Shown piece after piece: positions 11,708 to 63,158 of a stretch of 64,000 nucleotides of DNA. How positions within the stretch are numbered: the first letter of the stretch is position 1; each line of letters opens with the position of its first letter. Position numbers and translations under genes: made by a program. The notes beneath the pieces were generated by a model. It was not told where the DNA came from, did not search any database, and worked only from the letters and a program-made list of their open reading frames with translations. The stretch is taken from positions 124,001 through 188,000 of IMG/VR virus record IMGVR_UViG_3300023184_000026. One strand, given 5' to 3'.

Positions 11708-11887
11708 ATGAGCACCACTGATGACAAGTGTGTCTTTTATTTGGAAATGTTCAGAGATGGACTTTATATAAAATTGTCAGAAGAACTACAAAAAGAAGAC
11801 GCCGCAACAACTGCGGCGTTTTGTTATTATTTGGCGAAGTATGAAGGCGTTCACCATTTAGATTTTTTGCGTAAGTTGATAGGTTAG
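11708..11887 (+). CDS. hypothetical protein (59 aa, below the ORF-track cutoff)
   Basis: MSTTDDKCVFYLEMFRDG...RKLIG translated by hand. Confidence 0.5.
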   Translation: MSTTDDKCVFYLEMFRDGLYIKLSEELQKEDAATTAAFCYYLAKYEGVHHLDFLRKLIG

Positions 11888-12891
11888 GATTCCATCTTTT
11901 TCTTTATTTCATCTAATACCGAGAAATCGTTGTTCAATATTTGCGTCTCCCAAATATAAAATAAGCTAAGTCCCTTTTCTTGGCAAAATTTTGCTTTATT
12001 TTTGTCTTTTTCAATCTTGGATGATTGTATTTTGTTTATAAGACGTTTTCCATCTCCATACAGTTCTGGATTTGCGTGCCAGTAATCTCCTTGTACTTCA
12101 ATCAATATTTTGTGTTTTTTATTTCCAAAATCAAACTGCTTGTGTCCAAGTATAACACCAAACTTGAATGACAGTCCTCGTTTATTTAGTTCGTTTTGTA
12201 CAATGGACTCTATTTTGTTGGGTTTCCATGTTTTCATTTGCGATACCATTGCTGCGGTTCCACCCTTTGCCTTCAACCGTCGGTATTCTTCGGGGTCGTC
12301 CCGCTGCAATCTTTTCTGCGACTCGGATATTTTGTTGGCGTATTCTTTGATATATTCTTCGGACAATGATTCTCTCCACATCTTTCTTTTTTTGCTAATC
12401 AAGTCTTGCGTTTCTTTATTGTGTGATTTTCCATGAAATGGATTTTTGTTTCCAGAAAATGCAACAGACATTTTTTTTGCTCTGACCTTTTCTCTATTAT
12501 CCGCCTCTTCTTTACCGTATTTTTCAACCCACCTTTTATAATTTGATTTTCCAAAGTTGGCATTATTTTTCCCAACTCCCCATTTTCCTTTTCTCTCCTT
12601 GCTCAATTTGTCTTTGAAGTATCGGCTGTGTTTCTTTCCCTTGAAAGGATTTTGATGGGTTCCCCGCCATCTATTTCCAAAATATTCCCTAGTAAGGTGC
12701 GCGGAAGTTATGGATTTTATTTTATAATAAGAACTATCTCCCTTACATTGTATTTTGACATCGCTACCAGCAAGATGTTCTTTCACAATCTTGCTGGTAT
12801 CATCCATAAGATAATATGATGGATTATTCTTTGATTTGCCGCGATGATATTCAATTACAACTTTATCGTTTATTTTTATTATGTTCTTCAT
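11884..12891 (-). mobile_element. free-standing homing endonuclease: NUMOD3-like repeats plus C-terminal Vsr/DUF559-like PD-(D/E)XK nuclease
   Basis: NPFKGKKHS and NPFHGKSHNKET; FDFGNKKHKILIEVQGDYWH. Confidence 0.8.
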
Positions 12892-12895
12892 ATGA

Positions 12896-12925
12896 GACTC
12901 CTATATTACTATAAATATAGGAGTC
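12896..12925 (-). promoter_or_regulatory. RBS-sequestering hairpin containing the TATTTATA motif
   Basis: Perfect 12-bp stem 12896-12907/12914-12925; AGGAG 6 nt before the ATG at 12891. Confidence 0.75.
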
Positions 12926-12937
12926 GCAGACCAAACA

Positions 12938-13975
12938 TCAAAGTTTTTTATTATTTTTAACGTCCCACTCAACATTTTTCAAATTTCCACCGGCGTATGA
13001 AATGGAGCTTTGAAGATGTCCTATCATATGACGAAGCTTATCGGCGTAAGATATGCCGTCGCATTCCAATTCAATCAGAGTTCCTTCAATGTGGCTATCA
13101 CCCGTTTTGTTGTGAGAAGAAGCGGAGCCGTAATATTGTTTGTAAGTTTTTGTTATTATAATCGGACCGCCACCGGCATAATATTCATTGGACGAAACAT
13201 TCTTATATACTGTTTCGGCTGGAGAATCAATGCTGCGAGCAAATATGCCACCGGCCATAACCACACTTGCACCTGCAACAAGAGCCTTTGCTATGTCCCC
13301 GCACTCGGAAATTCCTCCGTCCGCAATTATTGGCCGTCTAGCAATCTTGGAACACTCCAAAATACAGCTAAACATCGGAACACCAAATCCAGTTTCATTA
13401 TAAGTCCGACACGCTTTTCCAGCCGCAATTCCAACCTTCGTGGCGTCTGCACCCCAATTCTCCAAGTCAACAACCGCACCAGCCGCCGCAACATTTCCAG
13501 CAATGATGAATGGTCGTTCATATGCTCCTCTTTTATAAACACTATGTAAAAATTCAAGCATTTCCTTCATTCTTACGCTGTGTGCGTGCGCAATATCAAT
13601 AGTTAGAAAATCTATGCGAAGATTTTTTAAGATGCAATAATGAATCAATTCCACGTCCTCTTCTTTCACACCAATACTGATACTGATATTCTTAAAATTT
13701 TCTTTGTTTGCAACTTCAATAAACTTTTTATTATCTGTGTTGGATGGTGCGGTTTTGTCTGCGTTGAAGCGATGCATGATATAAAAATATTCATTTTCAC
13801 TCATATACTTTGCTTTATCAACATTCATGGTACATTCCATGTTGGCTGGCACAACTGGTAATTTAAATGTTTGATCACCAAATTTTATAGAAGTATTTGC
13901 TTCACTACGTGAATGAAACTCGCTATAACGAGGCTTTAGAAACACATCTTGATATGAATAATAGGTTTTTGACAT
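12938..13975 (-). CDS. guaC: GMP reductase
   Basis: LPVVPANM, YFYIMHRF, IDIAHAHS, AGNV, KVGIAAGKACRT, IIADGGI, LQSSISYAGG. Confidence 0.88.
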   Translation of the reverse strand: MSKTYYSYQDVFLKPRYSEFHSRSEANTSIKFGDQTFKLPVVPANMECTMNVDKAKYMSENEYFYIMHRFNADKTAPSNTDNKKFIEVANKENFKNISISIGVKEEDVELIHYCILKNLRIDFLTIDIAHAHSVRMKEMLEFLHSVYKRGAYERPFIIAGNVAAAGAVVDLENWGADATKVGIAAGKACRTYNETGFGVPMFSCILECSKIARRPIIADGGISECGDIAKALVAGASVVMAGGIFARSIDSPAETVYKNVSSNEYYAGGGPIIITKTYKQYYGSASSHNKTGDSHIEGTLIELECDGISYADKLRHMIGHLQSSISYAGGNLKNVEWDVKNNKKL

Positions 13976-23534: not shown

Positions 23535-26500
23535 ATGAGAAATATATTTAGTCAATTCGATCAATCCAGCCCAGAAGGCGTTGTAAAAGCCCCACGCGGC
23601 GCAAAATTCTGTAGAAATGGTGATGATTTCTTCCTTGATGTTCGAGGAAACTTGCAGAAATTGAATATTTCAAAGAAGGCATTTGTTTATGGATCATATA
23701 TAAATGCGGGATTTACAACTCTAAAAGAAGAATATATCTCGTTTTCAAAACCAAGCGAAACATGGATCAAGCGAGGTGAGGGAAACAATAAAATAGGCTG
23801 GGTCAGCGTTGGATCATACAATTTATTTACAAGAGTTGTTGCAAATAATGTTCCTATATTATTGGAAAATATCATTGGTGCTTGGGCTGGCTATTATAGC
23901 AGTTATATACTAAACACAAGCAATGAACTATGGTCCGTTGGATATAACGATGATGGACAACTGGGAATTGGAAATACCGATTATCGTGGATCTGCAAGTT
24001 TGTCTTTGACAGATGTAAAACTCGCGGCATCAAGTTGTGAAGGATATTTTGCTGGCGCAGTAAAGAATGATAATACTCTTTGGTTCACTGGAAACGGTGC
24101 AAACGGAACATTTGGTAATGGCGGATACAGCAGTTATGATACATGGACAGAAACAGTACTTGAAGGTGATATCACAGGTTCTGGAGCAATAACAAATCTT
24201 GTAACTGGCGAAAATTACAGTGCATTGCTTATGGAAGATGATACATTGTGGGTATCAACCGATGAAATATTTGGACTATCAGCAACCACATTTACTCAAA
24301 TAACAAGCAGTATTAAATCTATTTCTGGTGGCGGCTATCACCTATTGTTTGTCAAGAATGATAATACATTGTGGGGCATTGGAAATAATTATCATTATCA
24401 ATTGGGCACTGAGGCAAGTTCTTCATTTGATTGGGACAATCCATACCAAATTGCATCAAATGTAGCATCATGCGCAGCAATGGGATATCACAGTGCATAT
24501 ATTGATACCGATGGTAAACTATTTACATTTGGTAATAACGGCAATGGACAACTTGGTACATCATATGGATATGATGACTTTGATGTGTCTGAACCACAAC
24601 TGATTGACACAGATGTAAAGTTTGTTGGTGGTGGTGACGATTTTACATACTATATAAAGAATGATGGAACATTGTATGGTATGGGCAACGACAACGATGG
24701 ACAATTGTCCAATAAATTCTATAATGATGTCATTGAACCAATATTGATTGACACAGATGTAACATACGCAGTGGGTGGAAATGAACATGGACTATATATC
24801 AAATCAGATAAAACATTATACGGAATGGGATACAACTATCAATGGCAATTGGGCAAATATGCACTTCCATTCAGTATGTATTATACAGACGCAACAGGAT
24901 GGACCACAGAAGGCACAGATGAATTTATCTTCACGGATAGTTATGGTACGGATGAAATTTACTGGCGCGATGTTATTTATGCAGATGGTAAATTCATTGC
25001 TGGTGGCGGCGAAGGAAATACTCAAATAAAATATTCTTCAAATGGTAAAAATTGGTCAAGTGGTTCTATTACAAATGTAGAAGGTGGAATTTCTGGTATT
25101 GCATATAACGGAACTAATACATATGTCGCTGTTTCAAGTGTATCAAATGGATACAACGACGGCAGACCAGAAGCATTCACATCAAGTGATGGTATTACTT
25201 GGACAACAGGTTCTTTGAACAACACAAACTATGACGAACTAAATCGAGTAAGATATGTCAACGGAAAATTCATTGCTGTTGGCGAAGACAGAATAGTAAC
25301 ATCGTCAAATGGAACAGATTGGGCAGAACAAACTGGATCATTTTCATCATACAACACAAGCGTTGCATATGGCAATGGAAAGTATGTAATATCGACTAAT
25401 GGGGGGACTTATAACAGTTACGATGAAAGAAATACATTCACACAAACATTTGATAATAACACCGCAAGTTATGTATCAGCTGGGGAGGATCATGTTTTAG
25501 TTATAAAAGATGATACATTATATGGTGTTGGCAGAAATGGCGATGGTCAACTTGGAAAAGACAGTTCGTTGGGAGAATTCATAAAGTTTGTTCCAATAGT
25601 GTCTAATGTTAGAAATGTAGCATCTGGTCGAGATCACGTAACCTTTGTAAAAAATGACAATACATTGTGGGGTATGGGAGATAATTATGAAGGACAACTT
25701 GGAGACGGAACTCGTGTCGAAAGATACTCGCCTGTTCAAATAGACACAAATGTATCACAATCATTCTGCTCATCAGAAAATGGAAGTTGTACAGCATATA
25801 TTAAGAACGACAACACCTTATGGGGTATGGGATATAACGGATATGGTCAACTAACTGGGTCTGTTATTGGTACATATGTAACAACATCAATTCAATTGGA
25901 CACAAATATTGTACAAGCGGCAATTAGCGACAATCATATATTGTATATCAAGAGCAACGGAAATTTATATGGAATTGGATATAACAACTATGGACAACTT
26001 GGAACTGGTGACACTAATGCACGTACATCATCATATCTTATAGACACAAATGTTGTATCTTGCGCTGTATCCGACTATACCTCATACTATATCAAAAATG
26101 ATAATACATTATATGGCATGGGATATAACAGCGACGGTCAACTTGGAATTGGTGCAAATTATAGCAATCAAATCACCGCAAGCATGATTACCGGAAGCGT
26201 AAAGCAAGTTTCTGCTACAAATGACAATGCATTGTTTGTTGCACTAGACGGCACATTATATGGCATGGGATATAATGGATATGGACAACTTGGAACTGGT
26301 GATTATACAAGTTATGATGTTCCAACTATATCAACCACGGATGTAAGCAAAGTATCTTGTGGAGAAGACTTCACATATATCATCAAAAATGATGGAACTG
26401 TGCTGGCTACTGGTGACAATAACTATAATGTTTTGGGTATTACAAACACAGCTGACAAAGTAATGTACTCAACTGATGCAACCACTTGGCACACAGCTTC

Positions 26501-26867
26501 AGTACCGGATTATTATTATAACGATGTTGCATTTGGAAACAACAAATTTGTTATGGTGTCGGATGATGACAGTTTTATTGTATCTTCTACAGACGCCATC
26601 AATTGGACAAGTAGTTATGTAACAACAAGTTCTTATGTATCGTTGAGTAAAGTGATATATGACGGAACCAAGTTTGTGGCAAGTAGTTATTACACAGACG
26701 ATGGATATAATATCTTTACATCCGCCGACGCTGTAAATTGGACGGCTTCAACGACTGGATATAACCAGAATTGGGGAGCACTTGCATATGGCGATGGAAA
26801 ATATGTATTGTTGTCTGGTGGATGGCAAAATGATGTAAATCCAAAAGTAAAACTGAATATCGGCTAA
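23535..26867 (+). CDS. RCC1-repeat/BNR-repeat beta-propeller protein, probable virion surface or adhesin protein
   Basis: Many LYGMGYNxxGQLG RCC1 units interrupted by SSDGITWT/IAYNG-type units; preceded by TATTTATA. Confidence 0.8.
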   Translation: MRNIFSQFDQSSPEGVVKAPRGAKFCRNGDDFFLDVRGNLQKLNISKKAFVYGSYINAGFTTLKEEYISFSKPSETWIKRGEGNNKIGWVSVGSYNLFTRVVANNVPILLENIIGAWAGYYSSYILNTSNELWSVGYNDDGQLGIGNTDYRGSASLSLTDVKLAASSCEGYFAGAVKNDNTLWFTGNGANGTFGNGGYSSYDTWTETVLEGDITGSGAITNLVTGENYSALLMEDDTLWVSTDEIFGLSATTFTQITSSIKSISGGGYHLLFVKNDNTLWGIGNNYHYQLGTEASSSFDWDNPYQIASNVASCAAMGYHSAYIDTDGKLFTFGNNGNGQLGTSYGYDDFDVSEPQLIDTDVKFVGGGDDFTYYIKNDGTLYGMGNDNDGQLSNKFYNDVIEPILIDTDVTYAVGGNEHGLYIKSDKTLYGMGYNYQWQLGKYALPFSMYYTDATGWTTEGTDEFIFTDSYGTDEIYWRDVIYADGKFIAGGGEGNTQIKYSSNGKNWSSGSITNVEGGISGIAYNGTNTYVAVSSVSNGYNDGRPEAFTSSDGITWTTGSLNNTNYDELNRVRYVNGKFIAVGEDRIVTSSNGTDWAEQTGSFSSYNTSVAYGNGKYVISTNGGTYNSYDERNTFTQTFDNNTASYVSAGEDHVLVIKDDTLYGVGRNGDGQLGKDSSLGEFIKFVPIVSNVRNVASGRDHVTFVKNDNTLWGMGDNYEGQLGDGTRVERYSPVQIDTNVSQSFCSSENGSCTAYIKNDNTLWGMGYNGYGQLTGSVIGTYVTTSIQLDTNIVQAAISDNHILYIKSNGNLYGIGYNNYGQLGTGDTNARTSSYLIDTNVVSCAVSDYTSYYIKNDNTLYGMGYNSDGQLGIGANYSNQITASMITGSVKQVSATNDNALFVALDGTLYGMGYNGYGQLGTGDYTSYDVPTISTTDVSKVSCGEDFTYIIKNDGTVLATGDNNYNVLGITNTADKVMYSTDATTWHTASVPDYYYNDVAFGNNKFVMVSDDDSFIVSSTDAINWTSSYVTTSSYVSLSKVIYDGTKFVASSYYTDDGYNIFTSADAVNWTASTTGYNQNWGALAYGDGKYVLLSGGWQNDVNPKVKLNIG

Positions 26868-34535: not shown

Positions 34536-37500
34536 ATGTCTAATAAAAAAATACACGAATGTATCAAAATTTTTAATATGAATAATATTCGCTTAATATA
34601 TCTATTGCTAATTTTTGCATCAAACTCCGTAGCTGCAACAGTGTCGGGAAATTTTCCGGCATCTACCATTCCTGCCGGAAATGTGGTGTCCTTAATTAAT
34701 CGGATGTATGTATATACAGCCGTGGTAGGCTCTGATAACAAGATTGTATTTACAAATGTTGAGGTTGGTCAATATACAATTCAATTATCGGCTCTGAGTG
34801 GATATACATTGAGCCAACCAATAACGACCACAGTTTCTTCAATGTCTGACAATGTTTTACTGGGCAACATGGCGGTCCAAAAGTACACTGTCGCTGGCAG
34901 TAGTTATAGTTATATATGGGCACAAGACCAAACATATGCGGGAACCGAGGCTGCTTCAAACGTCGTTGCTCCCACAGTCGTAAATATACTGGGTAAAGGA
35001 TATCAAATGTCTGATATCAGTTATGCCGGTCGTTTGAGTGACATATATAATATTACATTGGTTGATTCCATTCAACCTTGGGATTCTGAACGAGCTTATC
35101 GGCTATTTGCTACGCTTGATAGCATTCCTTATATTGACAAATCCCCGTATAGATTTAATGCAACAGCAACTCCGACGATTTGGAAATTAACCTCAGAATA
35201 TCTGGATAGTGATATAAAAATTGAAACAATTGGCGGAGTAAAGACCGTTACGATTGCATCTTCTGCATTTACTTACTCGGCTCCATTTGTTGCTCAAATT
35301 GAAAACAAGAAAGGACTGTACTTTTCCAAGAGGCTACACCACGCAGCACTTCTGTTCGTCACTGATGGCGGAACGGACAGTGTTGTAATAGATACGATTT
35401 TACAAACAAGATTTGGGGTAACTACTAAAATTCCCGATCATTTGACTCTTACGGGTGAACTTGCCGGAAGGTTCCAGCAATTCCGTCCAACCGAACTGCT
35501 CCAATTAATAAACACGTTTGAGGAATTACCGGAGGGATTTCATGTAATACCTATATTGAAGTATTTGGTACGAAGACTGGATGGTACGATTAATATCAAA
35601 TACCCAGAAGCTATGGCTATAGCGCATTCGTCGGGATATATAGAATTCATGGAAAAGGCTTTCGCGGGATACAACGAGATTGAAGTGCAGCGTGTTATTC
35701 TTCACGAGAAAGGGCATTTTATATATGGCTCGGTTATTTCTTCAGAAGTTCGAGATGCTTGGATAAAATTGGGAGGATGGTATAGAGAATCAAACGGCAC
35801 TTGGACAACAACCAAAACAACAGAGTTTGTGAGTGCATACTCTCATGCAAAAAATCCAGATGAAGATTTTGCAGAGACTGTAGCGGCATTTATCACCAAT
35901 CCGGATATTCTTAAATCTAGATCAATTCAAAAATACGAGTTTTTTAGAGACGCCATCATGTTTGGAAATAGTTATATTTCCCAAATCAGATCAGACCTTA
36001 CGTTTCAAGTATTTAATCTATTCCCCAATTATAATTATCCCGGAAAAATAAAACGAGTGCAGATCTCTGTTACCGGTGCTTCCAACGAAGATAAAACCGT
36101 AACATGTGAAATAGAAATCCAACCAGTTGGCATCAAGGATAACCCAGTACAGGTTATAAGCATGCGAGTTTTCGGTCCTAAAACAAAAGAATTGCCAATT
36201 GCCCCATATTTCGATTGGAATTTATATACAACATCCAATGGGTCAAATATTTTTAAAAGTTCATATACTATTTCAAAGCACTATCGTAGTGGATTTTGGG
36301 CTCCGGAACAGATTGTAATCACCGATTCTGTAAATAATCAACGATATGAAAGAGCCGTGCTTTATGGTTGGAAATGTTATATTGACAACCCATTGCAAGA
36401 TCTTGAAATTCCAAAATATGTCTCCAACAGTGCGAAAATGTCTGTCATCCCCAAAACAGTCAATGGTCGTCAAGTCCAAATTCTTTCAGTGGATTGGAAT
36501 GTTTCCGACGATATCGGACTTGAATCTTATTCAAGTGCCGTAAAACCGCCCGGCGACGGTTATACTATATATTCTTGGGGAACTTCTTTCTATGGGAACG
36601 GCGTAGCCCACACAGAATATATCATACCCGATTTTTTTCCATCCGGAGTTTATAAAGTACCTCAGTTTTTACTGAAAGATTATGGTGGAAACATAATATA
36701 TCCGTATTTCACAAATGGTGGGGGTGGTGCGGGTGGCGATGGAATTGGTATAAAAATAGACGAACCCAGTCCATCTATAACCATTACAACGCCATACCCA
36801 GACATTGAGCCACCGGAACTTGATCTAAATCGTATCACTCTTGCTGCTACACCAACTGTTCCGGATGCACCGAATGGAGAAACTCAAGTAACTATTACTT
36901 ATATGGTAAGAGACAATAGATCTGGCTTGGGAACTGTGTGGTTTAGATTGCGCGATCCACAGGGTATTGAACATTTTTATTATCATTTACACGAAAATTT
37001 TTATGAAACTTTTTTCAACGGAGATCCAACTGTTTGGAAGCAGTATAAAGTGACTGTTCTTCTGCCCATTGGTTCTGTTGCGGGAATGTGGGGACTTTCT
37101 AGCATGAATTTGGTGGATAAAGCAATGAACTCAAAATCATATTCGTTTGTTGAAACTATTAGATTCAACCCATATGTTATAACGGCATTTCCAGAATTTT
37201 CGGTTCAGCCAATATCTCAAACATCAACCGTAGCTGGTAATAACGTAACGTTTTCAACATCCGCCGCTGGAAGTCCAATCTATCAGTGGTATTTCAATGG
37301 CTCGCCAATATCCGGAGCAACCAATTCCATATACACCATAGTAAATGCTCAACCGAATTCGGTGGGAAACTATTGGGCAATTGCCACTAATAGCTCCGGC
37401 AGCATGAAGTCTTCCATTGCATCATACTCCATTGTTCAGACCGGAAACAGTGCAACTCATGTTTCTGTTGGCGATGGATACGTATCTGGTTTACCAATTA

Positions 37501-38159
37501 CAATTAAAAGTACGATATATTATACAGGAATAGCAACCGCCTTAAACATGGCAGTTTTACTTCCCGACGGATGGGGGTTTGTAGCATCATCGGGTGCCGT
37601 GGGCGAGCAGGGGCCAAAAATGTCACAGGCTGGTTATTTGGAGTGGATATGGACAAACATTCCCGCAAGTCCAGTGACGTTCACTTATACGATAATGGCC
37701 CCGCCGTCTGTTTCCGGACATCAAGAGTTCGTGGCGATAGTGGGTATTGAAAATGGATCTAGTATGAAGATTCTTGCCAACCCAGATCCACTTGTTATAT
37801 TGAAAAAATCACTACCCGAACAATCTATTCATTCCGCCGATTCTAATAAAGATTATAGAATAAGTTTAACGGAGCTTACGCGAGTTATAGAATTGTATAA
37901 CTGTCGCAATGGTTCAATTAGAACAGGAGCATATAATAACAAAAGCGGCACAGAAGATGGGTTTGAACCCGATAACACTCGCAATTCGGCAATTATTATG
38001 CCATATTATCATTCAGCGGACTCTAATAAGGATGGCAAGATTGGTTTAATGGAACTCACAAGAATTATTGAATTATACAACTATCGTGTAGGTTTAGTTC
38101 GCACAGGACAATACAGGGTGCAGTATGGCACAGAAGATGGATTTGCAACCGGACCATAA
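34536..38159 (+). CDS. secreted-type Zn-metallopeptidase (HExxH) with Ig-like domain and duplicated EF-hand/dockerin-like C-terminal repeat
   Basis: Signal peptide from Met at 34578; ILHEKGH; SAYSHAKNPDEDFAE; QPISQT..YQWYFNG..Y Ig domain; two HSADSNKD..I.L.ELTR.IELYN repeats. Confidence 0.75.
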   Translation: MSNKKIHECIKIFNMNNIRLIYLLLIFASNSVAATVSGNFPASTIPAGNVVSLINRMYVYTAVVGSDNKIVFTNVEVGQYTIQLSALSGYTLSQPITTTVSSMSDNVLLGNMAVQKYTVAGSSYSYIWAQDQTYAGTEAASNVVAPTVVNILGKGYQMSDISYAGRLSDIYNITLVDSIQPWDSERAYRLFATLDSIPYIDKSPYRFNATATPTIWKLTSEYLDSDIKIETIGGVKTVTIASSAFTYSAPFVAQIENKKGLYFSKRLHHAALLFVTDGGTDSVVIDTILQTRFGVTTKIPDHLTLTGELAGRFQQFRPTELLQLINTFEELPEGFHVIPILKYLVRRLDGTINIKYPEAMAIAHSSGYIEFMEKAFAGYNEIEVQRVILHEKGHFIYGSVISSEVRDAWIKLGGWYRESNGTWTTTKTTEFVSAYSHAKNPDEDFAETVAAFITNPDILKSRSIQKYEFFRDAIMFGNSYISQIRSDLTFQVFNLFPNYNYPGKIKRVQISVTGASNEDKTVTCEIEIQPVGIKDNPVQVISMRVFGPKTKELPIAPYFDWNLYTTSNGSNIFKSSYTISKHYRSGFWAPEQIVITDSVNNQRYERAVLYGWKCYIDNPLQDLEIPKYVSNSAKMSVIPKTVNGRQVQILSVDWNVSDDIGLESYSSAVKPPGDGYTIYSWGTSFYGNGVAHTEYIIPDFFPSGVYKVPQFLLKDYGGNIIYPYFTNGGGGAGGDGIGIKIDEPSPSITITTPYPDIEPPELDLNRITLAATPTVPDAPNGETQVTITYMVRDNRSGLGTVWFRLRDPQGIEHFYYHLHENFYETFFNGDPTVWKQYKVTVLLPIGSVAGMWGLSSMNLVDKAMNSKSYSFVETIRFNPYVITAFPEFSVQPISQTSTVAGNNVTFSTSAAGSPIYQWYFNGSPISGATNSIYTIVNAQPNSVGNYWAIATNSSGSMKSSIASYSIVQTGNSATHVSVGDGYVSGLPITIKSTIYYTGIATALNMAVLLPDGWGFVASSGAVGEQGPKMSQAGYLEWIWTNIPASPVTFTYTIMAPPSVSGHQEFVAIVGIENGSSMKILANPDPLVILKKSLPEQSIHSADSNKDYRISLTELTRVIELYNCRNGSIRTGAYNNKSGTEDGFEPDNTRNSAIIMPYYHSADSNKDGKIGLMELTRIIELYNYRVGLVRTGQYRVQYGTEDGFATGP

Positions 38160-39234: not shown

Positions 39235-39459
39235 ATGGTTACATCAAATAAAATTCCAAGTAAAAAGTCCGCTATAATAAAAGAAATAAAGGGAGATATT
39301 GGATTTGTATGTAGATTGCGTGAAATGGGATTTGGCGAAAGTATGACCATAACCAAAGTAAGTGATGACGCACATCGTTGTGTGATTATAAATTTAAAAG
39401 GTCACAAAATTTACTTGTCGGAAGCAGCAGCAGAGTGTATATTTGTTGAACTTGCATGA
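39235..39459 (+). CDS. feoA: FeoA-like SH3 domain protein
   Basis: AIIKEIKG...RLREMGFGESMTITKV..VIINLKG.KI.LS.AAA..IFV. Confidence 0.75.
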   Translation: MVTSNKIPSKKSAIIKEIKGDIGFVCRLREMGFGESMTITKVSDDAHRCVIINLKGHKIYLSEAAAECIFVELA

Positions 39460-39707
39460 TACAAATATTAGCCATATATTTTGCCACACTGGTTGTGGCT
39501 TGTGCAGTTAATTTTCAATATAGAAATGCTATAAAAGGCGACTATTTTGCCATTGGTTTAACTTCATGTTTGATTGGGTCTATAAATTTATTTATGTTGA
39601 AAACGATTCCACATGTAACACATATATCAGAAGGACTGGCTTATATACTTGGTGGAGCAACTGGAGCGGTTGGAGCCAATTATCTACACAAAAGATTTTT
39701 TAAATGA
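39456..39707 (+). CDS. small membrane protein
   Basis: Three hydrophobic segments; AYILGGATG. Confidence 0.6.
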   Translation: MIQILAIYFATLVVACAVNFQYRNAIKGDYFAIGLTSCLIGSINLFMLKTIPHVTHISEGLAYILGGATGAVGANYLHKRFFK

Positions 39708-39952
39708 AAGCACATATACCAGTTGAGCTGGGTAATCAACTACATAGTCAGATTAATAATCGGCCACTTAATCAGCTATGTGATCAGCTATATAGTCAGT
39801 TTAATATTAAGATTAATACTCAACTTAATAATCAGCTATATAATCTGTTTTATATTCAGTTGTCTGATCAACTATATAATCAGCTTGATAATCAGATATA
39901 TAGACAGCTATGTCTTCAGCTATATAATCAGCGACTTAATCAACTAAAATGA
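39704..39952 (+). CDS. xQLx tetrad-repeat protein 1
   Basis: About 18 units of the 12-nt consensus AATCAGCTATAT; leader MKAHIPVELG. Confidence 0.7.
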   Translation: MKAHIPVELGNQLHSQINNRPLNQLCDQLYSQFNIKINTQLNNQLYNLFYIQLSDQLYNQLDNQIYRQLCLQLYNQRLNQLK

Positions 39953-40173
39953 AATCATATAAAAAAGTAGATTTGGGTGTTGAAATACACACCAAACTAT
40001 ATAATCAGATTAATAATCATCTATATAATCATATATATAATCAGAAAGAAAGTCAGCTAGGTAGTCAGATAGATAATCAGCTAGTTAATCAGATACGTAA
40101 TCAGCTTGGCAATCAACTTAGTAATCAAATTGGTAATGAGCTACATAATCAACTTCGTAATCAACTAAAATGA
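39949..40173 (+). CDS. xQLx tetrad-repeat protein 2
   Basis: Same repeat; leader MKSYKKVDLG; ATGA-coupled. Confidence 0.7.
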   Translation: MKSYKKVDLGVEIHTKLYNQINNHLYNHIYNQKESQLGSQIDNQLVNQIRNQLGNQLSNQIGNELHNQLRNQLK

Positions 40174-40406
40174 AAGCACATAAACAAGTAGATTTGGGTA
40201 AACCAATTTATATTCAGCTAGTTAATCAAAAAGTAAAGTTGGGTAACACAATTTATATTCAGCTAGAAGATCAGCTAGATAATCAGCTATGTCTTCAGCT
40301 ATATAATAACCTAGCTAATCAACTATATCTTCAGCTATATAATAACCTAGCTATTCAGCTAAAAATTAAAAAGATTTATCTCGACAATCGGTATAAAAAA
40401 GTATAG
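40170..40406 (+). CDS. xQLx tetrad-repeat protein 3
   Basis: Same repeat; leader MKAHKQVDLG; ATGA-coupled. Confidence 0.7.
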   Translation: MKAHKQVDLGKPIYIQLVNQKVKLGNTIYIQLEDQLDNQLCLQLYNNLANQLYLQLYNNLAIQLKIKKIYLDNRYKKV

Positions 40407-40433
40407 TGTATTTCTCTAACATAAAAAACTATT

Positions 40434-40766
40434 ATGAATAAAAACGAAGTAATCCTCCACGGTGAATGTATGGTGTTTGCAAGCAAACTGCCATCTAATC
40501 TAAAGAAAATGAAAAAAAAGCCATTTATTATTGTTGCTCCAAGCGAAACCACAGGCAATCATCATGTTGTTGATGTTGTTGATGGTGTTGATTTTTATGA
40601 AAATGAGTCTGGAACTCTATTCATGGAAAGTTCGGTGGATACTACTATCCGCTGCGTTATGGCTGAACGACATGATGCTATTACTATTCCGGCTGGCACT
40701 TATGAATTTGGCAGTCAAGTGGAATATGATCCTTTTACTGCTCGACTTCAAAAGGTGCGCGACTAA
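40434..40766 (+). CDS. small beta-rich partner protein typically encoded next to DUF6745 genes
   Basis: ILHGE, APSETTGNHHV, H..ITIPAG.Y motifs; own promoter TCGACA at 40381. Confidence 0.65.
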   Translation: MNKNEVILHGECMVFASKLPSNLKKMKKKPFIIVAPSETTGNHHVVDVVDGVDFYENESGTLFMESSVDTTIRCVMAERHDAITIPAGTYEFGSQVEYDPFTARLQKVRD

Positions 40767-40814
40767 GTTCTTTATAGCAAAGATATAACATATAACACAT
40801 ATACAAATATCAAA

Positions 40815-41702
40815 ATGAGCAAGATTGAAAAACTCACAGCTGAACAAGAAAAAGACCTTCAAGTGTTTTATCGTGAAATGCTTGATTATGGTCGAAGCAT
40901 CAAACCTATTGATCATGAAAAGGCTGAAAATATTATCACAAGCTTTTATAAGCGAATGGGTCATGAAAAACCACAGTTCATGTATTTTTCCAGTCCCAAT
41001 GCAATTATTGAATATAAGAAAAAATGTGGCGATAATTCTGGTGTAGCTAATTATAGTCCCGGCCAGCAATGGATTTATTGGAAAGCTTTTTATACTTTTG
41101 CTGAAAAGATTGGCGTAAAATATTCAGAAGAAGACAGCAAGCTATTGGCCGAATGGATGACAGAATCCAAAGAGCTACATTGGTGGTTTCCATATGAGAA
41201 ATATGTGCTTGTATCTGAACGTCCCGTTCGTTTAACGGTCAATGAAGCTGGAATGCTTCATAATGAAAAGCACAAGGCTATTGAATATAGCGATGGCTGG
41301 GGTTTTTATTATCTCAATGGTGTTTGTGTTCCAGAAGAACTTGTTGTTACTGATTCTGAAGATCTTAGCTTGGATTTTTTTACAAATGAAAAAAATGCCG
41401 ATGTCAAGGCTGAATTTGTTCGCAAGTTTGGCGTTGAACGTATGCTTGATTTTGGCAAGAAAGTTGATAGCTATGAGAATTATGACAATGAAGAGCATCC
41501 TTATTGGCATGAATCTAGATATGAACTATGGGACATGAAAGTTCTGTTTGAAGGACTTGATTATCAGCCATATATAAAGATGCAGAATCAAACAACTGAA
41601 ATATGGCACGTTGAAGCAGTTTCACCAGCTTGTAGAACACTGAAAGATGCTATCAAAGAGCGTTTTGGTGGCAAAGATATGAAAATCTTGAACATCGCCT
41701 AA
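40815..41702 (+). CDS. DUF6745-like protein
   Basis: KLTAEQE N-terminus; FSSP; GQQWIYWKAFY; LHNEKHKAIEYSDGWGFYYLNGV; NADVK..FVRKFG; HVEAVSP. Confidence 0.75.
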   Translation: MSKIEKLTAEQEKDLQVFYREMLDYGRSIKPIDHEKAENIITSFYKRMGHEKPQFMYFSSPNAIIEYKKKCGDNSGVANYSPGQQWIYWKAFYTFAEKIGVKYSEEDSKLLAEWMTESKELHWWFPYEKYVLVSERPVRLTVNEAGMLHNEKHKAIEYSDGWGFYYLNGVCVPEELVVTDSEDLSLDFFTNEKNADVKAEFVRKFGVERMLDFGKKVDSYENYDNEEHPYWHESRYELWDMKVLFEGLDYQPYIKMQNQTTEIWHVEAVSPACRTLKDAIKERFGGKDMKILNIA

Positions 41703-41706
41703 AGCA

Positions 41707-41931
41707 GTGAATAAATATAAACAAGTTGAGCTGGGTAATCAGCTACATAGTCAGATTAATAATCAGCTATATAATCAGCTATATAATCAGCTTTGGAATC
41801 AGCTAGATAGACAGCTAAGTAATCAGCTATATAATCAGCTATATAATCAGCTTTGGAATCAGCTAGATAGACAGCTAAGTAATCAGCTATATAATCATGT
41901 TTATAACGAGAATAAGCTTGCCAAACTATAG
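41707..41931 (+). CDS. xQLx tetrad-repeat protein 4
   Basis: GTG start; leader MNKYKQVELG; NQLYNQLW repeats. Confidence 0.7.
   Translation: MNKYKQVELGNQLHSQINNQLYNQLYNQLWNQLDRQLSNQLYNQLYNQLWNQLDRQLSNQLYNHVYNENKLAKL
41761..41897 (+). repeat. exact 60-bp tandem duplication built from 12-nt units
   Basis: 41761-41820 identical to 41821-41880, plus a 17-nt partial third copy. Confidence 0.95.
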
Positions 41932-41954
41932 TTTATGTGCTTAAATAAGGCATT

Positions 41955-42629
41955 ATGAAAATTATTGGTATATCAGACTCCCACGGTTCTCATTGGGACA
42001 TAAAAGTTCCAGATGGAGATATTTTAGTTCATACTGGAGATTTTTCTTCACACGGAAGATTGCCAGACACACTTGATTTTTTGAGATGGTTCAACACACA
42101 TCCACACAAGCACAAGATTTTTATAGCGGGCAATCATGACTGGTTGATGGAACAAGATACAAACTTTTGGAGAATAATCAAAATGGAGTTTCCAGATTTG
42201 ACATATCTTCAAGATGAAGCTTGTGAAGTTGATGGACTTAAATTCTTTGGTTCTCCCCAAACCCCACGATTTTTTAATTGGGCATTTAATCGTGACAGAG
42301 GACAAGATATAAAGAGATATTGGGATAAAATTCCAACTGACACTGATGTACTTATTACACATGGTCCACCATATGGTATTTGTGATGAAGCATATCGTGT
42401 TGGCTTCAACACCACAGAACATGTTGGATGTAAAGATTTGCTTGATGCTACATTGCGTATTGCTCCCAAACTTCATTTGTTTGGACACATTCACTTTGCT
42501 GGCGGTCAAAGTTATGTTGCTCCAAAAACAACATATGCCAATGTTTCTTTACTCAACGAAGATTATCTTGTAGTGAACAAACCAATGATGTTTGATGTTG
42601 ACAACAATAAAATTGTGAGTATAGTATAA
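41955..42629 (+). CDS. metallophosphoesterase (MPPED/239FB-like)
   Basis: ISDSHG, HTGDF, IAGNHD, ITHGPP, HLFGHIH. Confidence 0.9.
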   Translation: MKIIGISDSHGSHWDIKVPDGDILVHTGDFSSHGRLPDTLDFLRWFNTHPHKHKIFIAGNHDWLMEQDTNFWRIIKMEFPDLTYLQDEACEVDGLKFFGSPQTPRFFNWAFNRDRGQDIKRYWDKIPTDTDVLITHGPPYGICDEAYRVGFNTTEHVGCKDLLDATLRIAPKLHLFGHIHFAGGQSYVAPKTTYANVSLLNEDYLVVNKPMMFDVDNNKIVSIV

Positions 42630-42830: not shown

Positions 42831-43379
42831 ATGAGTACACTAAAAGAACTTACAGCATATTCACATGCCCAAGCCGAAAACACGCCTTTTATGCGATTGT
42901 TTATGGCAAAGGCTCTTACAGAAGAAGAGTACATGGAATATATTACTCAACTTTCTGTTATTTATACAGCACTTGAGTTTGCTGCCGAAAAGGTTGGCAT
43001 ATTACAAGAACTTGATGGCATTCAACGAGCATCAAAAGTGCGAGCAGATGTATATGAACTAAACAAGAAACTTGGCAAACAATCCAAGATTTATTGGGAA
43101 ACTATTATGTATTACAACGAGATTACTCGTATGACAGAACGAGATGAAATTCTTGCTCATTTTTATGTGCGATATGCTGGTGATATGTATGGTGGTCAGA
43201 TGCTCAAGCCGCTTGCTCATGGCAGCGGAACAATGTATGATTTTGACGACAAGTTGCCAGTTCTGCGTCAAAAGATGCGTGAGCTTGCTACACCAGAACT
43301 TGCTGATGATGCCAACATGGCTTTTAACAGAACAATTGATGTTCTAAACTGCTCCATCATACACGTCGGCACATTCTGA
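42831..43379 (+). CDS. ho1: heme oxygenase
   Basis: LKELT..SHAQAE (proximal His), IYTALE, AHFYVRYAGDMYGGQ. Confidence 0.9.
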   Translation: MSTLKELTAYSHAQAENTPFMRLFMAKALTEEEYMEYITQLSVIYTALEFAAEKVGILQELDGIQRASKVRADVYELNKKLGKQSKIYWETIMYYNEITRMTERDEILAHFYVRYAGDMYGGQMLKPLAHGSGTMYDFDDKLPVLRQKMRELATPELADDANMAFNRTIDVLNCSIIHVGTF

Positions 43380-43380
43380 T

Positions 43381-44058
43381 ATGAGTGTTATATTCGACGA
43401 AATGAAAGTGTTGTCTAGTGATTTATATCTAAAAATCGCGAAGGACAATAATGAAATAGAAAGTGATATGCTGACTGCATATAACTGGACCAATCGTATA
43501 TTTCGTGGAGCAAAATTTCGTCGTGGTCATATTGAAATATTGAATGTTGTCGAAGACAAAAAGATGTGGATTATGCATATATGTATATTTCCACATCTTG
43601 ATGACACTTCACCAATATTTGGCTTTGATGTAATTTGTGGTGCCAATAAGATCACAGGAATATTTCTTGATTTTAGTATGGCAACAAACAATCATCCCAT
43701 GAACGTATGGTTTAAAAATAGAACCAAAGATGTTGTATGGAAAAAAGATCGTGAGTTGCCAGATTGGGGCAAGCGTATATTCAGTGAAAATATGATTGCT
43801 GCTGGTGGAGTAAACACCGAATCTGAACTAAATCAAATCATTGAAGTAGCCAAAGATTGCTTGGATTATTATGTAAATAATGTGGGCAGAACCATTGTTG
43901 ATTTTAGCGTGGCAGAACGACACAACAAATATTGTATAAATCAAAAAGAAAATGTTCATACAAAACGGTTTTTGATAAACTGCGGATATAAAGAAGATGA
44001 TGTCAAAAATTTTATTGACAAACACCTGTTTCCTGAAGTAAAATACAACAATATATGA
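43381..44058 (+). CDS. ferredoxin-dependent bilin reductase (PcyA/PcyX family)
   Basis: FRRGHIE, MHICIFP, PIFGFDVI, LDFS, RELPDW..IFS, YCINQKEN.HT; 1 nt downstream of the heme oxygenase. Confidence 0.85.
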   Translation: MSVIFDEMKVLSSDLYLKIAKDNNEIESDMLTAYNWTNRIFRGAKFRRGHIEILNVVEDKKMWIMHICIFPHLDDTSPIFGFDVICGANKITGIFLDFSMATNNHPMNVWFKNRTKDVVWKKDRELPDWGKRIFSENMIAAGGVNTESELNQIIEVAKDCLDYYVNNVGRTIVDFSVAERHNKYCINQKENVHTKRFLINCGYKEDDVKNFIDKHLFPEVKYNNI

Positions 44059-44080: not shown

Positions 44081-44950
44081 TTACAATAAATGCGGACGTA
44101 TAGAGTTCCACTTATCTTTTTTACGTTTCATGTACAATGAAGTATTTCCGCCATATAACAAATCTCCAACTCTCAATAGAGAATCAATTTTCATGACAGC
44201 CAATATGTAAATAGTGTTTCTTTTATATATGTGAACACTTTTCACGCCATTCTCTTCGAGAAATCGTTTAAGAAAATTTCCCAACTTTTCTGACACTACA
44301 ACACTAAAGTTGCAACTGGCAATATTGCCAGTTTTAGAAAAAGTACAAGTTATGCAACCATCTCCTTCATATAACCCCAACAGAAAATATCTCACAAGGT
44401 CTGTTGGGACTGGCGGCATTCCAAAATTAAAATAAGTTTTTCCACAACATACGCCAAGATTTTTTAAATCATCATAGATTTTTGCACGTGATATGTCCAA
44501 TATATAAGTTCCACCAGCACGATAAGTTTTTCCGTTTAGTGGAGAAACCATGTCGTGTTCTTTAACGTATCCCAACGGACGAGTGGTTTTTAGTATTTTA
44601 TTTATATCTTGTAAATACGCCACATCATCTTCTTTCAATCTTAAACTCATGTTTTTATTATCTTTACTCATAGTGCCATCCGCAAATATCATCCCAAGAA
44701 TTTGAGCTTTCTCGGGAGTATCTATTTTTTCAAAAAAAGATTCGTCTATGTCATACTTGCTAACAAAACAATTTTTCCTCGTTAGTTTTAACCCCAACCG
44801 TTTCAGTATTTTACTAACAGTTGACGGTGCTATATTGAACCGCGTGGACAAAATATTGTTAGTTGTTTCGGGATTGTTCTTGACAAACTCCGCAATATTA
44901 GTATATACTTCGGGCTGAATTGAATTGGGTCTAAATTTAATATTATTCAT
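44081..44950 (-). mobile_element. double-motif LAGLIDADG homing endonuclease with N-terminal HTH
   Basis: LGMIFADGTM and FLLGLYEGDGCI; start reassigned to ATG at 44950. Confidence 0.85.
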
Positions 44951-45010
44951 GCATATACATATAACAAAATATGGATTTCCACGAATATTATACTTTTTAT
45001 AACAAAATAT

Positions 45011-45622
45011 ATGAATAAAACACTTGACGATCAGATTTGTAATAAGTACCCGAAGATGTTTCGGGACCGTAATAAACCCATGAATGAAACTGCCATGTGT
45101 TGGGGATTCCAGTGCAGCGACGGGTGGTTTAATATTATAGATTCTCTCTGCACGGCACTGACGTATACCTACACAACCTCGGTTAAGGTTGATGCAGAAG
45201 ACGGTAAACGACTGGGAATAGAACCCAGTGTCTATGACAAAAAAACAAACTATTATTGCGAAATAATCCAGCCTCAAGTTGTAGTTAATACCGTAAAAGA
45301 AAAATTCGGTACGCTGCGATTCTATTATCATACTGAACTGGAAGAAAAAATGTCGTACTTGAAAGGGACGGGCAAATATCCGGAACTGGATAAAATACTG
45401 GAACGTTATTACAATTATTTCGACGGCATTGTGCATATGGCTGAAACACTATCTGAACGCACCTGTGAAATTACTGGACAGAACGGTGAACTGCATGTTA
45501 GTGGAGCAAATCGGTCTGGATGGTATAAAACTCTTAATTGTGAATATGCCAAGAATGACCCATTCTGCGTTGATAGAAACTATGTTCCTGTAAGTTCATT
45601 GAATAAAAAAGAAACATCATGA
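45011..45622 (+). CDS. conserved phage hypothetical protein
   Basis: GWFNIIDSLC, VKEKFGTLRFY, CEITG motifs. Confidence 0.7.
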   Translation: MNKTLDDQICNKYPKMFRDRNKPMNETAMCWGFQCSDGWFNIIDSLCTALTYTYTTSVKVDAEDGKRLGIEPSVYDKKTNYYCEIIQPQVVVNTVKEKFGTLRFYYHTELEEKMSYLKGTGKYPELDKILERYYNYFDGIVHMAETLSERTCEITGQNGELHVSGANRSGWYKTLNCEYAKNDPFCVDRNYVPVSSLNKKETS

Positions 45623-62836: not shown

Positions 62837-62842
62837 CTTTAT

Positions 62843-62978
62843 AGCTATATACAGTTTTATACAAGCTATATACAAAATATTATAGCTTATATACTTTTTG
62901 TTATACGCTATATACACTTTTATACAAGCTATATACTTTTTGTTATAGCGTATATACAAAACATTATAGCGTATATAC
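62843..62978 (+). repeat. seven phased copies of (A/C)GC(T/G)TATATAC-like units
   Basis: Starts at 62843, 62864, 62884, 62906, 62927, 62947, 62968. Confidence 0.8.
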
Positions 62979-63158
62979 AATATTATATAGCAAAAATTCG
63001 TTATATAATATGCACTATATAGAGAATATATGTTGTATCAAGAACAATATAGCATATATGGTTTTGTCAAAAAAACCTATATAACAGGGCACCAATTCAA
63101 TTATATATGAAATTTAAAAAATGTCAAACACATAAAAATTTATATCAAAAATTATTTG

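Follow-up and report, generated by a model that had tools for sequence, protein, structure and literature searches.

The closest described relative of the locus studied here is the Pfam family DUF6745 (PF20530), represented for example by gp174 of Microcystis phage Ma-LMM01 and gp38 of the Mycobacterium prophage prophiGD102-1. The family is very large and almost purely viral (9,296 representative clusters at E <= 1e-3, clustered at 50% identity), but it has no assigned function and no solved structure, and literature searches on DUF6745, on tetrapeptide repeats in phage and on literal repeat strings found no paper in the searched library. Three other kinds of system share some of the features described below. 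Pentapeptide-repeat proteins such as Qnr and MfpA consist of short tandem repeats, A(D/N)LXX, with one fixed hydrophobic residue, a nearby N/D and a variable copy number. Multi-precursor RiPP loci such as those of the prochlorosins contain arrays of small paralogous genes with a conserved N-terminus and a hypervariable remainder, placed next to conserved larger genes. Variable proteins of diversity-generating retroelements (DGR) and repeat-protein receptors combine a fixed scaffold with variable positions.

Here we examined a 64-kb stretch (64,000 nucleotides, hereafter the window) of a 297-kb contig of a freshwater jumbo phage, in which an initial annotation based on sequence alone had pointed to a DUF6745-like gene pair surrounded by four small paralogous genes made of xQLx tetrads, and had proposed them as a candidate undescribed variable-cassette system. 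We find that the region is a copy of a widespread and apparently undescribed three-part module, composed of a DUF6745 protein, a small His-rich partner and a hypervariable tetrad-repeat element, which here occurs as four small genes and not inside the DUF6745 protein.

Results

The features of the locus, all on the plus strand, are as follows.
39456..39707 (+), predicted membrane protein of 83 aa, possibly a co-translated member of the unit, although its membership is uncertain.
39704..39952 (+), tetrad-repeat small protein T1 (82 aa), with the leader MKAHIPVELG followed by about 16 xQLx tetrads and ending in NQLK.
39949..40173 (+), tetrad-repeat small protein T2 (74 aa).
40170..40406 (+), tetrad-repeat small protein T3 (78 aa), the last gene of the upstream array, with a distinctive tail, IKKIYLDNRYKKV.
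40434..40766 (+), partner protein P (110 aa), suggested by its invariant residues to be a small metal-binding protein or enzyme.
40815..41702 (+), DUF6745 core protein (295 aa), the repeat-less form.
41707..41931 (+), tetrad-repeat small protein T4 (74 aa), the only downstream copy, with a GTG start 5 nt after the DUF6745 stop.
41737..41897 (+), recent tandem duplication of a 60-nt (5-tetrad) unit inside T4.

Every sequence statement of the initial annotation was confirmed. The four small proteins share the leader M-K/N-x-H/Y-x-x-V-E/D-L-G, the first three genes are chained by ATGA overlaps, and T1 is coupled in the same way to the membrane-protein gene upstream. Tandem Repeats Finder reported period-12 arrays in all four ORFs and, within T4, a period of 60 nt (2.7 copies, 95% matches, score 287). 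The 24-nt block CAGCTATGTCTTCAGCTATATAAT occurs exactly twice, at 39905 in T1 and at 40284 in T3, with 0 occurrences expected in shuffled sequences. T1 and T4 are 75% identical over 198 nt, and their first ~43 nt after the leader differ at one base. Only these four ORFs in the window contain 4 or more consecutive tetrads. Within the tetrads Q (44/53) and L/I (52/53) are nearly fixed, whereas the first position takes 16 different residues. The four ORFs thus fit a description of free tetrad-repeat proteins for which there is no database family: 40-150 aa, a short leader, at least 5 consecutive tetrads with a fixed polar residue followed by a hydrophobic one, and a tandem arrangement with stop/start overlaps. 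Homologues of these proteins were found (P0121-P0151 in our collection), of which P0128-P0133 share the leader and the NQLK end of T2, and P0122 is an orthologue of T3.

The 295-aa protein is a clear member of DUF6745 (E = 1.5e-16, 60.8 bits against a cut-off of 27), with 253 homologues found in a word index. Its AlphaFold2 model (mean pLDDT 95) shows an N-terminal helical domain (about residues 1-120) and a C-terminal alpha/beta domain. A Foldseek search of this model against the PDB gave no match (best E = 1.3), while the best BFVD match was the DUF6745 protein of Microcystis phage LMM01 (E = 1e-15). The initial annotation had further claimed that many DUF6745 proteins carry an internal xQ(V/L)x run, which this copy lacks, and this is true as well. 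Of 263 sampled family members, 60 carry a run of 6-56 tetrads in 11 flavours (QV, QL, SV, NL, AV and others) at one fixed site, between helix 3 and helix 4 of the N-terminal domain and between the SP and GQxW motifs. The prophage protein gp38 carries about 50 internal [W/R/G][G/D]QL tetrads at this site. The window protein does not belong to this repeat-bearing subtype, as it has there only a 12-residue loop (residues ~70-82).

The partner was found by HMM in 52 of 55 DUF6745 viral loci, usually adjacent to the core gene, and in Ma-LMM01 its homologue gp175 lies next to gp174. The invariant residues are H9 G10 E11, S37 E38 G41 N42 H43 H44, C74, R79 H80, E97 D99 and D110, and the window protein carries the defining motifs HGE ... 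SETTGNHH ... RH ... QQEYD ... VRD. No Pfam or PDB sequence match was found for it. One protein, encoded at the locus we denote L158, unites tetrads, core and partner in a single 469-aa chain, with the partner fused at the C-terminus.

The association of free repeat genes with repeat-less cores, which had been named beforehand as a test of the proposal, was then examined in viral contigs. Free arrays next to repeat-less DUF6745 genes occur in many viral lineages, with up to 15 genes per array; they were found beside 1 of 28 repeat-bearing DUF6745 genes and 29 of 42 repeat-less ones (Fisher p = 1.5e-8). With flanks of at least 2 kb the counts were 0/10 against 25/33 (p = 2e-5). As the second set of loci was selected for QV repeats, which biases the counts, the unbiased first set should be regarded separately, and it alone gives only 0/4 against 24/37 (p = 0.024). 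The internal and free states switched at least six times on the DUF6745 tree, and free and internal tetrads have the same positional profile. However, the association is not obligate: 13 of the 42 repeat-less loci showed no free array within 6 kb in the fetched flanks, and in a reverse scan 55 of 120 viral loci with QV-tetrad runs, including giant-virus MAG contigs, had small tetrad ORFs but no DUF6745 or partner in the stretch fetched, which was often short. No other recurrent neighbour family was found there.

Comparison with near-identical relatives (contigs L056-L059) indicates that the arrays change quickly. These relatives carry 11 small genes, 4 upstream and 7 downstream, where the window has 3 and 1. 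The small ORFs are 53-87% identical at the amino acid level where flanking genes are 95-99% identical, and the upstream membrane protein is conserved at the same position with 96-98% identity. The positional orthologue of T1 in L056 is 72% identical and differs by tetrad indels. T3 against its orthologue in L056 (4170-4406) shows 10 non-synonymous and 0 synonymous changes, while DUF6745 shows 3 and 11, and the neighbouring genes are under purifying selection; the T3 values are nevertheless also compatible with relaxed constraint (P about 0.1 under neutrality). T4 is 53-60% identical to the last downstream gene of L056 and L059 and has the tail of that gene, NENKLAKL. Its first-gene-type leader, its T1-like start of the repeat region and its last-gene tail suggest, by inference, an array collapsed by recombination. 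Strains identical over 830 nt differ only by one 12-nt unit, although it should be kept in mind that repeat copy numbers in short-read assemblies can be artefactual.

Several properties indicate that the small ORFs are coding. The fixed positions vary synonymously (Q is CAG 35 times and CAA 9 times; L is CTA, CTT, CTG or TTG), indels are always multiples of 12 nt, and leaders and stop/start overlaps are conserved. Contigs assembled from lake metatranscriptome runs cover the partner and core genes, and one spans T1 with an in-frame 168-nt skip; this is not a proof of transcription, since DNA carry-over was not excluded.

Searches of family libraries (Pfam, PHROGs, NCBIfam and PADLOC) gave nothing meaningful for the small ORFs or the partner. 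Matches to PADLOC models were of low complexity only (E >= 2e-4) and all confined to the repeat region. PDB profile searches for the partner and for DUF6745 gave nothing below E = 0.25. The ESM Atlas places the small protein in purely viral "hypothetical" clusters of 54-146 members. Megablast and blastn of the region and its neighbourhood against deposited phages found nothing, tblastn with the window protein found only one distant uncultured record, and tblastn with another sequence of our collection, P0098, found Microcystis phages and one mycobacterial prophage. A scan of bacterial genomes returned 3 MAG contigs only, but its patterns were specific to this subfamily and therefore say little about the wider family. 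The upstream 83-aa membrane protein gave only weak hits (phrog_30225, E = 1.6e-4; the holin phrog_7045, E = 0.004; Pfam Phage_holin_3_1, E = 0.049, below its cut-off), and no endolysin was seen nearby.

Discussion

Our data support the view that the small ORFs are a free-standing version of the tetrad module that other DUF6745 proteins carry internally. The initial annotation was right in what it observed, whereas its interpretation is supported only in part. It is supported that free arrays go with repeat-less cores, that the gene pair is a conserved one and that the arrays diversify quickly. Docking of the small proteins on the core, a role as decoys or specificity subunits and membership in a host-conflict system were also proposed, and for these we have no direct evidence; no defence or anti-defence family matched, so that host conflict rests only on evolutionary rate and genomic position. 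The term variable cassette is apt only at the level of expressed paralogous proteins, since these are not silent donor cassettes: each has its own start codon and conserved leader, and most are joined to their neighbour by a stop/start overlap.

The explanation we prefer, though only tentatively, is that the region is one copy of a large, phage-borne module of three parts: a DUF6745 core with a predicted two-domain fold not seen in the PDB, a ~110-aa partner rich in His, Glu and Cys that almost always accompanies it, and a tetrad element with the pattern [hypervariable, often W/Y/R/G/D/S]-[N/D/S]-[one lineage-specific polar residue, here Q]-[L/V/I]. In roughly a quarter of DUF6745 proteins the third part is an insertion in one loop, and in this phage lineage it has been split from the core and multiplied into small, translationally coupled genes on both sides of the pair. 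The analysis itself establishes this anatomy, the fusion and fission between the parts, the near-complete mutual exclusion of internal and free tetrads, the rapid change in copy number, repeat number and residues, and the presence of the pair in lake metatranscriptome assemblies. It remains our inference that the small proteins act together with the core and partner and supply in trans what the insertion supplies in cis, most likely as an exposed, fast-evolving surface whose variable positions contact a changing target. In this view the module would work during early or middle infection in host take-over or counter-defence, and diversification would proceed by 12-nt unit slippage, by unequal crossing-over or gene conversion between paralogues and by residue replacement at the first two tetrad positions. 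The hints on timing come from cultured phages, in which the gene sits among replication genes: in Ma-LMM01 gp174 and gp175 lie between the DNA polymerase and UDG genes, which are transcribed as middle genes (PMC5780444), and in prophiGD102-1 gp38 sits between RepA-like and WhiB genes.

One would argue that the tetrad proteins are an independent family of small viral repeat proteins, which merely accumulate in the same variable accessory island as DUF6745, the internal runs being a separate acquisition of an easily generated repeat. The 55 loci without DUF6745 or partner and the purely viral clusters of the ESM Atlas speak for this reading, but we consider it unlikely, as unrelated neighbours are not expected to exclude each other so nearly or to switch state repeatedly on the core tree. 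Moreover, the arrays bracket the pair on both sides in the window lineage, free and internal tetrads share their positional profile, the triple fusion in L158 links all parts, and DUF6745 may lie elsewhere in genomes for which only short flanks were fetched. It could also be that the tetrad run is a length-variable spacer or low-complexity element whose sequence matters little, and that the free genes are nearly neutral by-products of repeat-driven recombination kept going by translational coupling. The huge variation in repeat number, the absence of synonymous changes in T3, the collapse of the downstream array to a single chimeric gene with a GTG start and the low AlphaFold2 confidence in the repeat region agree with it. 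However, the third and fourth tetrad positions are strictly kept within a lineage while the first two vary, the leaders, tails and overlaps are conserved across diverged lineages, arrays of up to 15 intact genes persist, and a spacer role cannot explain free-standing proteins. This possibility seems somewhat less likely still.

A RiPP-like arrangement, in which the small ORFs are precursor peptides and the partner and/or DUF6745 modify them, is suggested by tandem small genes with a conserved 10-residue N-terminus and a variable remainder beside two uncharacterised proteins, one of which has invariant His, Glu and Cys residues typical of metal sites. We regard it as very unlikely. No known RiPP enzyme, protease or exporter domain was found in the pair by Pfam and NCBIfam searches, the leader is very short and differs between lineages, and the variable part is a regular repeat which in a quarter of the family is embedded in the middle of the DUF6745 protein, whereas known precursor-enzyme fusions carry the core peptide at the C-terminus. 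It is least probable of all that the ORFs are not genes and that the 12-nt arrays act as DNA (binding sites, recombination hot spots) or are diversified by a DGR. Two of the three forward frames are indeed open across the repeats (for example 39723-39947), and the variable codons are mostly NNT, which superficially resembles AAY-codon mutagenesis, but an AT-rich genome explains such codons. The same protein pattern is kept across lineages that use different residues and codons, in addition to the synonymous variation, in-frame indels and conserved leaders and overlaps described above. The DGR idea was rejected, without an exhaustive search for a reverse transcriptase, because differences between orthologues involve all bases and are not adenine-specific, and because repeat analysis of the locus (39650-41980), which does not cover the rest of the 297-kb contig, reported only the tetrad arrays and no template/variable repeat pair.

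The tetrads also differ from pentapeptide repeats, since their period is 4 residues and not 5, N/D lies two residues before the hydrophobic residue and not next to it, and there is no Pfam hit at E <= 0.1. AlphaFold2 calls the tetrad region helical and not a beta-helix, but with low confidence (pLDDT 53-69), and in our assessment the N/D/S/G/V-rich composition does not favour helices. A canonical heptad coiled coil does not fit, because the hydrophobic residue recurs every 4.0 and not every 3.5 residues. As in DGR variable proteins and repeat-protein receptors, a fixed scaffold carries a variable position rich in W, Y, R, D, G and S, residues typical of binding sites, and turnover between strains is fast; here, however, the variation would arise by slippage, recombination and ordinary substitution. 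The repeat itself may also be a new structural motif. A more far-reaching possibility, which is not excluded but which we consider unlikely, is that the tetrad proteins form a new kind of peptide-repeat scaffold displaying a stripe of hypervariable, binding-type residues, and act as interchangeable specificity subunits for a DUF6745/partner effector enzyme. Phages could then either build one such subunit into the enzyme or carry a rapidly reshuffled repertoire of up to 15 detachable ones, tracking variable host targets such as defence proteins.

This analysis shows that DUF6745 is the core of a three-part module with a constant small partner, that the third part is a fast-evolving tetrapeptide-repeat element which moves repeatedly between being built into the core and being encoded as tandem small genes, and that strains otherwise identical differ only in these repeats. 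Such a pattern is the signature expected of a phage-host interface under an arms race. As cultured systems exist, namely Ma-LMM01 gp174/gp175 and the M. abscessus prophage gp38, the module offers a concrete and testable entry point to the family.

Two further observations concern the gene pair. The sequence P0103 looked like a DUF6745-partner fusion, but it lacks the end of one gene and the start of the other, may be a deletion or an assembly chimera, and was not relied on. A conserved minus-strand ORF next to DUF6745, at first taken for a separate family, turned out to be the antisense shadow of the partner gene.

Gene organization of the region

The window is part of a 297-kb IMG/VR contig from a freshwater lake (IMGVR_UViG_3300023184_000026). 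Its GC content is about 35%, most of the larger ORFs lie on one strand, and the genes are typical of a large phage: PIF1 helicase, DNA ligase, ThyX, glycosyltransferases, heme oxygenase and a bilin reductase. The two DNA stretches that we compared with deposited phages (39.4-42.1 kb and 42-47 kb) matched none of them. Between 39.4 and 42.0 kb the plus strand encodes, in this order:

39456-39707 (+), 83-aa predicted membrane protein
39704-39952 (+), first small ORF (ORF1), joined to the previous gene by an ATGA stop/start overlap
39949-40173 (+), second small ORF (ORF2), joined to the previous gene by an ATGA stop/start overlap
40170-40406 (+), third small ORF (ORF3), joined to the previous gene by an ATGA stop/start overlap
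40434-40766 (+), 110-aa ORF
40815-41702 (+), 295-aa ORF
41707-41931 (+), fourth small ORF (ORF4), with a GTG start

Just upstream of the membrane-protein gene that leads into the array lies a gene for a 74-aa FeoA-domain protein (39235-39459; PF04023, E = 5e-8), which is conserved in relatives.

The four small ORFs share the leader M-K/N-x-H/Y-x-x-V-E/D-L-G, after which they consist of 12-nt units, and they are the only ORFs in the 64 kb with four or more consecutive tetrads. The observation made in the initial annotation holds in every detail: the exact 24-nt block shared by ORF1 and ORF3, the similarity between ORF1 and ORF4 and the 60-nt duplication in ORF4 were all confirmed.

The small ORFs are coding

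The fixed tetrad positions vary synonymously: Q is encoded 35 times by CAG and 9 times by CAA, and L is encoded by CTA, CTT, CTG or TTG, while the first tetrad position takes 16 different residues. All length differences between relatives are multiples of 12 nt. The leader, the C-terminal tails and the stop/start overlaps are conserved in homologues from other samples, and other phage lineages keep the same protein pattern with other residues and codons, such as xQVx, xSVx and xNVx. A second frame is also open across the repeats (39723-39947), but this follows simply from the unit sequence. A contig from a lake metatranscriptome spans ORF1 with an in-frame 168-nt skip, and contigs from four metatranscriptome runs cover the 110-aa and 295-aa genes at 95-99% identity, although DNA carry-over in those libraries cannot be excluded.

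The DUF6745 protein and its partner

The 295-aa protein is a member of DUF6745 (E = 1.5e-16). This family is very large, as a profile search found 9,296 representative clusters at E <= 1e-3. The AlphaFold2 model of the protein is confident (mean pLDDT 95) and shows an N-terminal helical domain and a C-terminal alpha/beta domain. The model has no fold match in the PDB (best E = 1.3), and in BFVD it matches only other DUF6745 proteins, the best being that of Microcystis phage LMM01.

The 110-aa protein is a constant companion of DUF6745: an HMM built from it hits 52 of 55 DUF6745-containing viral loci, usually as the adjacent gene. Its invariant His, Glu, Cys and Asp residues suggest a metal site, which is an inference from the sequence alone. 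No profile of the family libraries or of the PDB matched this protein.

Internal and free-standing tetrads

The initial annotation stated that many DUF6745 proteins carry a similar tetrad run internally, and this is right: many homologues have such a run at one fixed place, between the third and fourth helices of the N-terminal domain. Of 263 sampled members, 60 have 6-50 tetrads, in the flavours QV, QL, SV, SL, NL, AV, KV, EV, NI, TL and TV, and the proteins encoded in the fetched loci reach 56 tetrads. One example comes from a cultured M. abscessus prophage: gene 38 of Mycobacterium phage prophiGD102-1 (locus L060, 4929-6374) encodes a 481-aa DUF6745 protein with about 50 consecutive [W/R/G][G/D]QL tetrads, whereas the gene after it (gp39, Cys-rich) is not a homologue of the 110-aa partner.

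In order to compare the two arrangements we collected 55 viral loci around DUF6745 genes and 120 loci by a reverse scan for seven consecutive QV tetrads. Among 70 non-redundant complete DUF6745 genes, 28 have internal tetrads and only 1 of those has a free tetrad ORF nearby, while of the 42 that lack internal tetrads, 29 have free arrays of 1-15 small genes on the same strand (Fisher p = 1.5e-8). When at least 2 kb of flank was required on both sides, the counts were 0/10 against 25/33 (p = 2e-5), and in the first set alone, which was not selected on repeats, they were 0/4 against 24/37 (p = 0.024). On a tree of the core protein with the repeat columns dropped, the internal state needs at least six changes. 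Free and internal tetrads have the same positional profile: a variable position rich in W, R, G, Y, E and S is followed by D/N/S, then by a fixed polar residue and then by V/L/I. Additionally, one 469-aa protein (locus L158, 10080-11489, minus strand of the locus) combines in a single chain the DUF6745 N-terminal domain, 20 xAQV tetrads, the DUF6745 core and a C-terminal domain matching the 110-aa partner (E = 1.4e-4). Taken together, this is fusion/fission ('Rosetta stone') evidence that the three parts belong to one functional unit.

However, the association is enriched but not obligate. In 55 of the 120 QV-tetrad loci there were small tetrad ORFs without DUF6745 or the partner in the fetched stretch, and no alternative recurrent neighbour appeared in them. 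Some of these lie on contigs binned as giant-virus MAGs (L084, L095, L103, L110, L131, L141, L144 and other loci of the reverse scan), where small ORFs with 7-11 QV tetrads could be either homologous to the phage tetrad proteins or convergent low-complexity ORFs. Also, 13 of the 42 DUF6745 loci lacking internal tetrads showed no free array within the fetched flanks.

Dynamics of the arrays

Syntenic relatives from other lakes (loci L056-L059) have the same flanking genes at 93-99% amino-acid identity (85-95% in the case of the downstream metallophosphoesterase), but they carry four small genes upstream and seven downstream (four or five in L059), where the window has three and one. Copy numbers are all subject to the caveat that repeats were assembled from short reads. 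Positional orthologues of the small genes are only 53-87% identical. ORF3 differs from its orthologue by 10 non-synonymous and 0 synonymous changes, whereas DUF6745 shows 3 and 11 and the membrane protein 2 and 6, respectively. L056, L057 and L058 are identical over 830 nt of the downstream array except for a single 12-nt unit, and L058 has a 24-nt deletion in another gene. The single downstream gene of the window combines a first-gene-type leader with the tail of the last downstream gene and has a fresh 60-nt duplication, which we interpret as an array that collapsed by recombination and is expanding again, although this is an inference.

Possible role of the module

None of the analyses assigns a function, but the genomic context hints at early or middle expression. 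In Microcystis phage Ma-LMM01, gp174 and gp175 (the DUF6745 protein and the partner homologue) lie between DNA polymerase gp178 and uracil-DNA glycosylase gp173, and those two, as well as neighbouring replication genes such as gp169 and gp180, are reported as middle genes (PMC5780444). In prophiGD102-1, gp38 lies between a RepA-like initiator and WhiB genes, and in the window the module sits among auxiliary and nucleotide-metabolism genes.

It could be that the small proteins supply in trans what the insertion supplies in cis, namely an exposed, rapidly changing surface on a DUF6745/partner complex that would be used in host interaction during infection. This is our best explanation, but it remains tentative: the gene organization, the alternation of internal and free tetrads and the rapid turnover of the arrays are seen in the sequences, whereas the complex, its surface and its use in host interaction are inferred. 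The proposal of the initial annotation, that the repeats are provided in trans as a diversifying repertoire docking on the DUF6745 core, is only partly supported. Regarding the fold of the repeat, AlphaFold2 predicts three helices at pLDDT 53-69 for an internal xQLx run; however, in our assessment a hydrophobic period of exactly 4 and the N/D/S/G/V-rich composition do not fit an ordinary coiled coil or a stable helix.

Alternatively, one could argue that the tetrad proteins function independently of DUF6745, that the tetrads are a near-neutral spacer, that the arrangement is RiPP-like with the small ORFs as precursors, or that the repeats are explained at the level of DNA or by a DGR. The last of these explanations is essentially excluded, as regards a DGR within the limits of a repeat analysis of the locus (39650-41980), which reported no template/variable repeat pair.

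Searches of Pfam, PHROGs, NCBIfam, PADLOC, PDB sequences and folds, BFVD, the ESM Atlas and 8.4 million papers produced only the label 'DUF6745'. In these sources we found no description of the three-part organization, of the partner family, of the tetrad element or of the alternation between its built-in and free-standing forms.

Other features of the window

Downstream of the module, at 42831-44058, a heme oxygenase (PF01126, E = 4e-17) is directly followed by a ferredoxin-dependent bilin reductase (PF05996, E = 3e-16), a phage-borne bilin-synthesis pair in a freshwater jumbo phage, which is conserved in L056-L059. Between the bilin reductase and a 203-aa gene, a LAGLIDADG plus winged-HTH homing-endonuclease-like ORF lies on the opposite strand (44081-45436, minus strand). 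In L056 and L058 those two genes are adjacent, so this looks like a mobile insertion. The listed 451-aa ORF overlaps the 203-aa gene, so its true start is probably later. A minus-strand island (11884-13975) in the predominantly plus-strand sequence holds an IMPDH/GMP-reductase-family gene (E = 2e-49) and a NUMOD3/DUF559 endonuclease-like gene, and GC skew is inverted there.

A 1,110-aa protein (23535-26867) has several RCC1-like repeat domains (PF25390, E = 2e-111), which is unusual in a phage. A 1,207-aa protein (34536-38159) has a hydrophobic N-terminus, an HExxH motif (HEKGH), an Ig_3 domain and two C-terminal copies of an HSADSNKD...L.ELTR.IELYN motif that looks dockerin- or EF-hand-like, and it may be a secreted or virion-associated metalloprotease. 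Finally, at 62838-62991 there is a tandem array of about seven 21-nt units (also scored as 42- and 63-nt units) built around the core TTATAGCTATATAC, which may be a set of promoters or binding sites.
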